Shown here piece by piece: positions 14,658 through 57,681 of a DNA stretch of 64,000 bases. This DNA is from Podarcis filfolensis (lineage: Eukaryota). Each line of letters begins with the position of its first letter. Position 1 is the stretch's first letter. A program made the translations under genes and the position numbers. A model generated the notes under the pieces. That model was not told where the DNA came from and did no database searches. It saw nothing but the letters and a program-made list of their open reading frames with translations. The stretch lies in assembly GCA_964270895.1 (NCBI GenBank), contig OZ185439.1. The stretch is one strand, 5' to 3'.

Positions 14658-16500
<1,843 letters not shown>

Positions 16501-17739: not shown

Positions 17740-17879
17740 NNNNNNNNNNNNNNNNNNNNNNNNNNNNNNNNNNNNNNNNNNNNNNNNNNNNNNNNNNNNN
17801 NNNNNNNNNNNNNNNNNNNNNNNNNNNNNNNNNNNNNNNNNNNNNNNNNNNNNNNNNNNNNNNNNNNNNNNNNNNNNNN
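17740..17879. other. N gap (140 nt)
   Basis: Run of N. Confidence 1.
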
Positions 17880-20607: not shown

Positions 20608-20736
20608 NNNNNNNNNNNNNNNNNNNNNNNNNNNNNNNNNNNNNNNNNNNNNNNNNNNNNNNNNNNNNNNNNNNNNNNNNNNNNNNNNNNNNNNNNNNNN
20701 NNNNNNNNNNNNNNNNNNNNNNNNNNNNNNNNNNNN
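20608..20736. other. N gap (129 nt)
   Basis: Run of N. Confidence 1.
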
Positions 20737-22986: not shown

Positions 22987-23071
22987 GAACCAAGTTAGAA
23001 AATAAGGCACAAGGTTTCCCTTGTAATGAGGAAAAGAAAACGACTTTACAGAAACCTTCTGGGACAGTCAA
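22987..23071 (+). CDS. ZIC4: Putative alternative upstream ZIC4 exon (mammalian-type N-terminus); coding from ATG 23026
   Basis: Acceptor CTTTTCTCTCCTGAACAG|G and donor TCAA|GTAAGT. It translates (I)RHKVSLVMRKRKRLYRNLLGQS, closely resembling the human ZIC4 N-terminus [23 protein letters not shown] (recalled). The phase-1 end fits the acceptor at 31012. Confidence 0.75.
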
Positions 23072-30110: not shown

Positions 30111-30462
30111 GTCCTGCTGCTGCTTCTCAAAGCGTATGGGATTCCACGTAGGCATTAAAAAAAAAAAAAGGAAGGAGGAAAAACACACACACACAAAATA
30201 ATGGAAGAGGAGGGGGAGGAAAGAAAGGGGAAGGGGGGAAGAGGGGAGCAAAAACAAAACAAAGCCAAATAGTCCAGACCAAGAGAGAGGGAGGGGAAAA
30301 ACCTTTTTTCTTTGCGGGTGGGGGGGGGGACTTTCAAAAAAGTTTTTCCACCGCTCTTTCCCTCTTCCTCTTTCTCCCTCGCTCCCCCCTCCTCGGCGTC
30401 AGGTGACTTTTTAGAATTGTAGTAGAACCAGGAGAGCTTGGAGGCTTTGGGGGAGCCCAGTA

Positions 30463-31654
30463 ATGGACTCTGCTTCACTCTCCAAACGGAACACGGCGCT
30501 GAAATTACTAGGCTTGGCAGGGGCTCCTCGTCATCGTCATCACCGCCTCCATCACCACTCCCCTCAGAGCATGACAGGCTTCGCCGGGCATCCCCACTCC
30601 ATGGTTCCCACGCACCCTGGGGAGTACGCTGCAGAAAGCCGCCTCGGGCTGAGTCCATTCCGGTCAGAACACATGGGGCACCACCACCATCCTCTCCATC
30701 ATCATCATCACCACCGCCACCACTCTCATCCTCCTCATCACTCAGCGGCCCTTAAGCTCAGCCCTGCCCCTCAGCCTCATCCCCACCATCCTGTGACAGG
30801 CCAAGCCGAGGTGGTACCCAGTCCAGCAGGAGCATTTGGCCCGGCGCAGTCAACAACAGTCCCTTACGCAGTCCCTCACCCAAGTCATGCTCTTTCATCA
30901 GGTAGGGAATTCTTCCTGCGCAGAGATCTGACAGCCCCAGTCATGCCAGGGCTCCCTTATCAACACTCTGCTGCTACAGGTTCTCACCATGGAATGTTTG
31001 TCTCAACAACAGGTAGCTACCCCGGACACCATGCTCACCACCACCATCACCACCACCTCCACCACCACCACTCAGAAGCCGGAACTCCCTCGCTTTTTAC
31101 TGGACTCCACCATGAGCAACCTCCCCATGCAGCTCCAGGTGGCCATCTAAACGGACAGATAAGGCTGGGGCTACCTGGAGAAATGTATGCCAGGTCTGAA
31201 CCTTTCACGCCAGTACCAGTCTCCAGGACAGATCCTTTTGCTGCTTCCTCCTACCACGGCTACGGTGGCATGAACCTGAACGTGAATTTAGCTCCACACC
31301 ACGGCCCTGGGGCTTTCTTCCGCTACATGAGGCAGCCCATCAAGCAGGAGCTCATCTGCAAGTGGATCGAACTGGACCAGACTCCCAAAAAATTATGCTC
31401 GAAAACTTTCAGCACCATGCACGAGCTGGTGACTCACGTCACCGTGGAGCACGTTGGAGGGCCGGAACAGTCCAACCACATTTGCTTCTGGGAAGAGTGT
31501 CCCAGGGAAGGGAAGCCTTTCAAGGCCAAATACAAACTGGTCAACCACATCCGAGTCCACACGGGGGAGAAACCTTTCCCTTGTCCTTTCCCGGGATGCG
31601 GGAAAGTCTTCGCTCGCTCGGAAAATCTCAAAATCCACAAAAGGACGCACACAG
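30463..31654 (+). CDS. ZIC4: ZIC4 coding exon 1, long form (His-rich N-terminus, ZOC-like motif, ZF-NC, zinc fingers 1-3)
   Basis: [20 protein letters not shown]... with [10 protein letters not shown] (ZOC-like), [25 protein letters not shown] and [12 protein letters not shown]; donor CACAG|GTCAGT at 31655. The head-to-head position with ZIC1 identifies it as ZIC4. Confidence 0.95.
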
Positions 31655-36299: not shown

Positions 36300-37030
36300 G
36301 CTCAATAACCTGTGACCTGCAGACACGCCACCCCGCCACCCCAATAAAACACGCAACACCCGCACCTTTCCCCACCCTGGTCCTTTACGCAAAGTCTCCC
36401 TGGATTCCCTCTTTTCCTTGCAGGCGAGAAGCCCTTCAAATGCGAGTTCGAGGGCTGCGAGCGCCGCTTCGCCAACAGCAGCGACAGGAAGAAGCATTCC
36501 CACGTGCACACGAGCGACAAGCCCTACAACTGCAAAGTGCGAGGCTGTGACAAGTCCTACACGCACCCCAGCTCCTTGCGGAAGCACATGAAAGTCCACT
36601 GCAAGTCCCCACCTCCCAGCTCGGGCTACGAGTCGTCCACCCCGTCGCTGGTGTCGCCGTCGTCGGACTGCGGCCGGGAGCCCCCTCAGCCGCCACCACC
36701 GCCGCCGCCGCCACCGCCTCCCGCAGCGGCTTCCTCCACCCAGGCGGCAGCCAACCTGAGCGAATGGTACGTGTGTCAGAGCTCAGGGGCCAGCGGCATC
36801 CCGACTCCACCCAGTAACTCTCCGTCACCTCACCCGGGAGAGGCCGCTTACACGAACTGCGAGCCCCGGCCCACTTATTAAAGTCAATACGGTAGGATGG
36901 CCCGCCGGCGGCGGCGAGACTGCATTGTTCTTTTCGGGGTGCTGTGGATCCTTGGCTCACACTGGACGAACGGCGGGTCGGCAAGGCCCGGTTCTTGGGG
37001 GAGGGGCGGAAATCGATCCCAGGCCTGGGG
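36300..37030. other. CpG-rich island over ZIC4 exon 2
   Basis: High CpG and GC3 density by eye. Confidence 0.65.
36424..36881 (+). CDS. ZIC4: ZIC4 coding exon 2 (zinc fingers 4-5 and C-terminus to stop)
   Basis: Acceptor CTTTTCCTTGCAG|GC; encodes [71 protein letters not shown]...NLSEWYVCQ...PTY-TAA. KKHSHVH and CKVRGC are typical of Zic4/5. Total CDS 1650 nt, 549 aa. Confidence 0.96.
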
Positions 37031-54227: not shown

Positions 54228-54375
54228 NNNNNNNNNNNNNNNNNNNNNNNNNNNNNNNNNNNNNNNNNNNNNNNNNNNNNNNNNNNNNNNNNNNNNNNNN
54301 NNNNNNNNNNNNNNNNNNNNNNNNNNNNNNNNNNNNNNNNNNNNNNNNNNNNNNNNNNNNNNNNNNNNNNNNNNN
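54228..54375. other. N gap (148 nt)
   Basis: Run of N. Confidence 1.
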
Positions 54376-57541: not shown

Positions 57542-57681
57542 NNNNNNNNNNNNNNNNNNNNNNNNNNNNNNNNNNNNNNNNNNNNNNNNNNNNNNNNNNN
57601 NNNNNNNNNNNNNNNNNNNNNNNNNNNNNNNNNNNNNNNNNNNNNNNNNNNNNNNNNNNNNNNNNNNNNNNNNNNNNNNNN
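57542..57681. other. N gap (140 nt)
   Basis: Run of N. Confidence 1.

Follow-up and report, generated by a model that had tools for sequence, protein, structure and literature searches.

Our analysis of a 64,000-nt stretch of the Podarcis filfolensis genome (GenBank assembly GCA_964270895.1, contig OZ185439.1; hereafter the window) indicates that positions 30902-31012 are probably a real and very old optional intron lying inside the first coding exon of Zic4. When retained, this segment would encode the ZOC motif and the following ~30 residues; its removal would leave a slightly shorter Zic4 that lacks exactly this block. Introns of this kind are reportedly what Marquez et al. named exitrons (exonic introns) in 2015. 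An in-frame intron removing the ZOC block had been proposed in an initial annotation of the window, and the proposal is now supported by splice sites conserved in all nine species compared, by isoforms annotated with precisely this junction in over 30 species, and by one presumably RNA-derived contig.

A six-frame motif scan and the list of open reading frames place Zic1 and Zic4 as a head-to-head pair in the window (Table 1). In a protein search, the best matches to the N-terminal region of the plus-strand gene were all ZIC4 (E 1e-141 to 1e-60 for the top matches, with ZIC5 matches only at E ~1e-20), and identities to squamates ranged from 77 to 85% (skink 85%, tegu 82%, rattlesnake 77%). The gene encodes ZF-NC and five C2H2 fingers and has a sole coding intron after ZF3, with no second; ZF4-5 and the C-terminus thus lie within one exon, unlike in the Zic1 of the same window. 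By gene order, architecture and closest relatives alike, it is a Zic4 ortholog, that is, a Zic of subclass B. Translation of exons 1 and 2 gives a long form of 549 aa. The C-terminal end varies among relatives, with many annotated proteins stopping at ...ANLSE (Pogona X2, Monodelphis X3, several birds, cat) and others extending beyond it (..ANLSE/WYVCQ..), a difference that corresponds to 36762-36770 of the window. Four runs of N of 129-148 nt (17740-17879, 20608-20736, 54228-54375 and 57542-57681) are either assembly gaps or masked stretches.

Table 1. Features of the Zic1-Zic4 region in the window. Slashes within sequences mark splice junctions; consensus values are matches out of nine.
Feature	Position	Strand	Details
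Zic1 zinc-finger exons	~13.5-15.1 kb	-	six-frame motif scan
Zic1 ZOC region (paralog control)	15320-15490	-	no GT or AG at homologous places
Distal "mammalian-type" exon	22987-23071	+	MRKRKRLYRNLLGQS + 1 base; donor caa/gtaagt; predicted to join 31013
Zic4 exon 1, coding, long form	30463-31654	+	open reading frame; ATG 30463; 397 codons + 1 base
Putative exitron (in-frame optional intron)	30902-31012	+	111 nt, 37 codons; G(REFFLRRDL...MFVSTT)G
Putative exitron donor	30899-30907	+	CAG/GTAGGG (tcatcag/gtaggg); GT 30902-30903; consensus 7/9
ZOC-like motif REFFLRR	30904-30924	+	translation and alignments; RDFLIRR in most other species
Second in-frame AG	30978-30979	+	gctacag/gt; 78 nt
Candidate branch point CTCAC	30983-30987	+	A at 30986; acceptor 26 nt downstream
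Putative 3' splice region	30991-31012	+	GGAATGTTTGTCTCAACAACAG; nearly invariant in 9 species, synonymous sites included
Putative exitron acceptor	AG 31011-31012	+	tttgtctcaacaacag/g
Post-acceptor codons (G)SYPGHH	31013-31030	+	GTAGCT donor-like; GGT AGC in 9/9
Zic4 exon 1 donor		+	cacag/gtcagt; phase 1
Zic4 exon 2 (ZF4-5 and C-terminus)	36424-36881	+	stop TAA 36879-36881

The putative exitron lies wholly within the open reading frame of exon 1, and the form that retains it aligns with the full-length Zic4 of many species. The segment has the sequence attributes of an exitron, being situated inside a coding exon, bounded by GT and AG, free of stop codons and divisible by three, with phase 1 at both ends. 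The cut would fall one base into the Gly codon just before REFFLRR, and the predicted spliced product, of 512 aa, reads HALSS-GSYPGHH across the junction. The initial annotation had described the donor, the CTCAC, the acceptor, the length, the phase, the lack of a stop and the change from 549 to 512 aa, and every letter and coordinate proved correct. The 7-mer CAGGTAG occurs as a direct repeat at the two ends of the segment (30899-30905 and 31010-31016), a possible source of reverse-transcription artefacts. Directly after the acceptor, GTAGCT is donor-like (7/9 consensus, conserved in 9/9 species); either join would regenerate a phase-1 5' splice site, in the same phase as exon 2, in a manner that resembles a recursive splice site.

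Taken alone, the lizard sequence proves little, and the exitron is not more than chance would yield, because exon 1 (39 GT, 71 AG) contains 260 in-frame GT..AG pairs 60-500 nt apart and because the pyrimidine tract of the acceptor is weak (9/19, versus 15 and 14 for two undoubted acceptors). Judged by consensus-match counts, the exitron donor is among the four best of the 39 donor-like sites in exon 1, with seven of nine positions matching versus eight of nine for both the true intron donor and the distal-exon donor. The second in-frame acceptor at 30979, to which the initial annotation had also pointed, is present but specific to this lizard lineage, where AGT has changed to GGT; ACA AGT or a similar sequence stands at this place in the other species. 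It also lies upstream of the conserved branch-like site, and we regard it as a chance occurrence.

Comparison between species gives a different picture. Exon 1 was aligned by codons between this lizard and eight other species, for which the Zic4 loci of a skink (L001), rattlesnake (L002), turtle (L003), crane (L004), opossum (L005), catshark (L006), eel (L007) and spadefoot toad (L008) were used. GT and AG are found at homologous places in all nine, bounding a segment of 108 or 111 nt. On the donor side, codons 146 (NCA), 147 (GGT) and 148 (AGR) form an NCA G/GT AGR that is unchanged in 9/9 species, even as the residue before the junction varies between S, A, T and P (TCA, GCA, ACA, CCA); the arginine after the donor is AGG or AGA in every species and CGN in none. 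This conservation is limited to positions -3 to +7, beyond which the next upstream codon is free to vary. On the acceptor side, codons 182-185 are ACA ACA G/GT AGC in all nine species, synonymous positions included, within a nearly invariant run of GGA ATG TTT GTN TCR ACA ACA G/GT AGC TAY. Both junction glycines are GGT throughout, although no Gly codon is rarer in these exons (12%), and both acceptor threonines are ACA, a codon that accounts for 34% of Thr in the same exons. The branch-like site is CTCAC in seven species and CTCAT in the other two. Conservation of CAG/GT at synonymous positions, named in the initial annotation as a way to check the exitron, was thus found at both ends. Across species, the exitron splice sites are far more than a product of chance.

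Synonymous constraint, computed only where all nine species share the same residue, is highest within exon 1 at the acceptor. Mean pairwise codon identity is 0.85 near the acceptor versus 0.63 in the rest of exon 1 (Mann-Whitney p = 0.001), and codons with fourfold or higher degeneracy are identical in all nine species at 9 of 14 sites near the acceptor versus 11 of 72 elsewhere (Fisher p = 4e-4), p-values that are optimistic in that the nine species share ancestry, although their lineages are deep. Codon identity is only 0.59 in the zinc-finger region, where the protein is more conserved. This pattern of constraint is that of splice signals superimposed on coding sequence.

Isoforms in the databases are consistent with use of these signals. 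We classified 225 retrieved proteins by the residues preceding SYPGH and obtained three classes: long proteins with the block, short proteins with the N-terminus of a distal exon, and long proteins lacking exactly the block, which read ...AQAL(S/T)A/GSYPGH... Annotated members of this last class come from more than 30 species, ranging from sturgeon to marsupials, and are drawn from RefSeq, Ensembl/UniProt and independent genome projects; most are computed gene models. The class includes snakes (Liasis olivaceus isoform 2, Thamnophis sirtalis), turtles (Pelodiscus X2, Mauremys reevesii X2, Chrysemys X4), birds (Falco tinnunculus, Chlamydotis), marsupials (Monodelphis X2 and X4, which are 36 aa shorter than X1 and X3; Sminthopsis; Dromiciops), frogs (Ascaphus X2, Leptobrachium, Engystomops), the coelacanth (X2), sturgeon (X2) and both gars. 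Among teleosts, it was found in tarpon, bonefish, arowana, arapaima, smelt, herring, shad, anchovy, electric eel, milkfish, turbot and a dozen cyprinids, including Danio aesculapii. Both forms are annotated within one species, for example, in Monodelphis (X1/X2 and X3/X4) and among cyprinids (X1/X2), and the check on fish, frog and bird records proposed in the initial annotation found Zic4 without the 37-aa block in all three groups. One protein, P0093 (403 aa), is encoded by a 1,278-nt Logan contig. This contig lacks the block and spans the pre-junction sequence, the join of exons 1 and 2 and the stop codon; it would be derived from RNA, because 1,278 nt cannot contain the intron of 2.7-5 kb. 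A protein search around the junction in the python isoform returned no further transcript-derived records.

The acceptor also appears to serve as a landing site for upstream exons. The distal exon of the lizard (Table 1) is bounded by a strong acceptor and a phase-1 gtaagt donor, and joining it to 31013 gives ...QSSSYPGHH. The same join is present in annotated short isoforms of Anolis, Heteronotia, Pogona, Phrynocephalus, birds, turtles and marsupials (...QSS/KSS to SYPGHH), and the short placental N-terminus, MRYKTSLVMRKRLRLYRN..ESS/SSSGHHG, uses this junction as well. The proposal that one acceptor serves both the exitron and the distal exon is therefore borne out by short isoforms of lizards, birds, turtles and mammals. 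Other upstream exons reach the same acceptor in parrot, marsupial, cat and crucian carp. Its own strong acceptor and the in-frame TAG that precedes its ATG mark the distal exon as internal, with MRKRKR as the start of translation, the arrangement also seen in Anolis and Heteronotia. An additional coding exon further upstream (MKDDRLDG...) is present in birds, turtles and Pogona.

This second use of the acceptor leads to the most serious alternative, which we consider unlikely: that the acceptor is real but serves the distal exon or exons only, and that its pairing with the internal donor is rare, functionless splicing noise in the lizard. Relatives provide ample records of distal exons joined to the acceptor, and the lizard records would fit such a reading, as no ZOC-less long form was found among the lizard records retrieved. 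All lizard long-form models (Pogona, Lerista, Salvator, Varanus, Euleptes) retain the block, and the ZOC-less squamate models are those of two snakes; the short distal-exon models of lizards (Anolis, Heteronotia, Pogona X3) do not bear on the exitron. Two bulk RNA runs from a close relative (X23 and X24, 2026) gave 0 reads on 30300-31290, which means that Zic4 was unseen in these samples and that they are uninformative for splicing. The noise explanation fits poorly with the donor, however, which has no other known use and nevertheless keeps its NCA G/GT AGR, with the rarest glycine codon, in every species compared. Furthermore, fishes, frogs and the coelacanth keep the acceptor and have ZOC-less models, yet no mammalian-type distal exon was seen there. 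We infer that the exitron is used in this lizard, since its splice signals are intact and conserved.

Among the sequencing runs searched, no run recorded as RNA contained the stretch. Two contig sets (X1 and X5) compared with 30300-31290 yielded a single match, a 448-nt contig of a 2025 run from a close relative (X5). It covers 30329-30767 only, reaching from the 5' UTR into the beginning of exon 1, with three substitutions and three gaps relative to the window. Run X15 contained every sampled word and may stem from the source individual, and the small runs with 0.2-0.8 of the sampled words may be DNA capture libraries rather than RNA.

It is still less probable that the GT and AG occur by chance, that their conservation reflects constraint on the protein or on the DNA as such, and that the ZOC-less records are reverse-transcriptase jumps or copied gene-model guesses. 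The abundance of in-frame GT..AG pairs in exon 1 would allow for such an accident, the 7-nt direct repeat at the two ends is of the type where reverse transcriptase can jump, and most of the records are predictions. Part of the conservation is also at the protein level, because the residues after the block are conserved as protein in Zic5 too. Constraint on the protein would, however, hardly account for donor conservation that stops at the splice-site positions and leaves the preceding codon free to vary, or for synonymous constraint exceeding that of the zinc fingers. Independent annotation pipelines, several in number, call the same junction, and in the two-exon contig it is the only path, which rare template switching would not give. 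A third possibility, that 31012/31013 is a recursive (ratchet) splice point from which CAG/GTAGCT then acts as donor to exon 2 and gives an in-frame product without ZF1-3, is suggested by the conserved donor-like GTAGCT and by the phase shared with the exon 2 acceptor, but is very improbable, as no such isoform occurs among the 225 proteins, although it would be hard to find by the searches used, and GGT AGC also encodes the conserved residues G-S.

With the exitron as the preferred explanation, the spliceosome would pair the internal donor CAG/GTAGGG with the internal acceptor CAACAG/G in a share of the long-form transcripts, probably using the conserved CTCAC as branch point. The spliced mRNA would stay in frame, hence free of premature stop codons, and would encode a ZOC-less Zic4 whose zinc fingers and C-terminus are intact. 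The acceptor would act as a hub, receiving the distal upstream exon or exons as well and so giving rise to the short N-terminus of mammalian type. The ratio of retained to spliced transcripts may be regulated.

The segment that would be removed carries a regulatory motif known from other Zic proteins. The ZOC consensus is RDFL-(1-2 aa)-RR (Layden et al. 2010, PMC2988786), and under a criterion of RDFL-(1-2 aa)-RR or (S/T)RDFLxxxR, the Zic4 motifs of turtle, opossum, eel and shark (RDFLIRR) match the consensus exactly. The skink has RDFFLRR, and the lizard REFFLRR differs by D>E and L>F. Like the ZOC of ZIC1-3, the Zic4 motif is RDFLxRR-like and has the same relative place before the zinc fingers. 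The ZOC of ZIC2 binds I-mfa, and deletion of ZOC from ZIC3 raises its activity at isolated binding sites; the motif has been called a partner-binding site (PMC7403390). Partner binding and transcriptional modulation by ZOC are known only for ZIC2 and ZIC3; by analogy, loss of ZOC may alter the partner binding or transcriptional output of Zic4.

The Zic1 motif of this window, unlike that of Zic4, is not flanked by splice sites. Its sequence is ACG CGG GAC where the donor would be and GCC GGC AGC where the acceptor would be, and the absence of both GT and AG rules out an equivalent exitron in Zic1. Zic5 of fishes, sharks and a caecilian (P0095-P0116) contains a homologous block, (S/G)RD(F/Y)(I/M)LRR...HHGMF(I/L)S(T/P)TG(S/A)Y, which in sharks reads SG-RDY...STTG-SY. 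The same exitron might exist, or might have existed, in Zic5; among 10 Zic5 records, no ZOC-less protein was found.

Besides its position, GT-AG ends, length and open frame, the Zic4 segment resembles exitrons in having a rather weak 3' splice site and in removing a short motif or disordered region with the frame kept. It differs in that it shares its acceptor with alternative first exons, and in that its splice sites are conserved over the sampled jawed vertebrates, from catshark to opossum. To our knowledge, such a range is unusually deep for described exitrons. A literature search, with subscription-only papers largely outside its reach, found no description of a Zic4 isoform that skips ZOC. 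Exitrons are already known as a class, and the ZOC-less Zic4 isoform is present but unremarked in many database records.

These results also bear on the current view of the Zic family, in which subclass A has ZOC and subclass B (ZIC4/5) is said to lack it (PMC7403390). Functional work on ZIC4 uses the short placental form (PMC7403390). The lizard distal exon encodes MRKRKRLYRNLLGQS and would join SYPGHH at the acceptor used in placentals, where the ZOC-less state looks constitutive, whereas in the lizard it would be optional. Placental read-through models show ...LFVSTTG before the junction and no ZOC-like residues further up, and about 10 codons of the old exon thus seem to persist in placentals as a 3' splice region, consistent with loss of the long form and retention of the acceptor only. 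The statement that mammalian ZIC4 lacks ZOC, on which the initial annotation relied, applies to placentals and fails for the opossum, whose genome retains the whole long exon with ZOC (L005, ~7665). Among the opossum proteins (P0009, P0156, P0158, P0161), isoforms X1 and X3 keep the block and X2 and X4 are without it; distal-exon isoforms are annotated too. Because the opossum retains this exon, loss of ZOC from ZIC4 would be a trait of placentals and not of mammals as a whole. Whether a regulated switch between ZOC-bearing and ZOC-less Zic4 was kept from catshark to opossum, with the ZOC-less state fixed in placentals through loss of the long first exon and the absence of ZOC from ZIC4 being a derived placental condition, is in our judgement evenly balanced.

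If most vertebrates make Zic4 both with and without ZOC from one exon, the rule that separates the Zic subclasses would be a placental peculiarity, and the function of ZOC could be approached through a natural on/off pair. The case would offer a clean example of how an intron within a coding exon and an alternative first exon that share an acceptor can lead to the loss of a domain. Its importance would lie in the depth of conservation and in the revision of a Zic family rule, which is directly testable.
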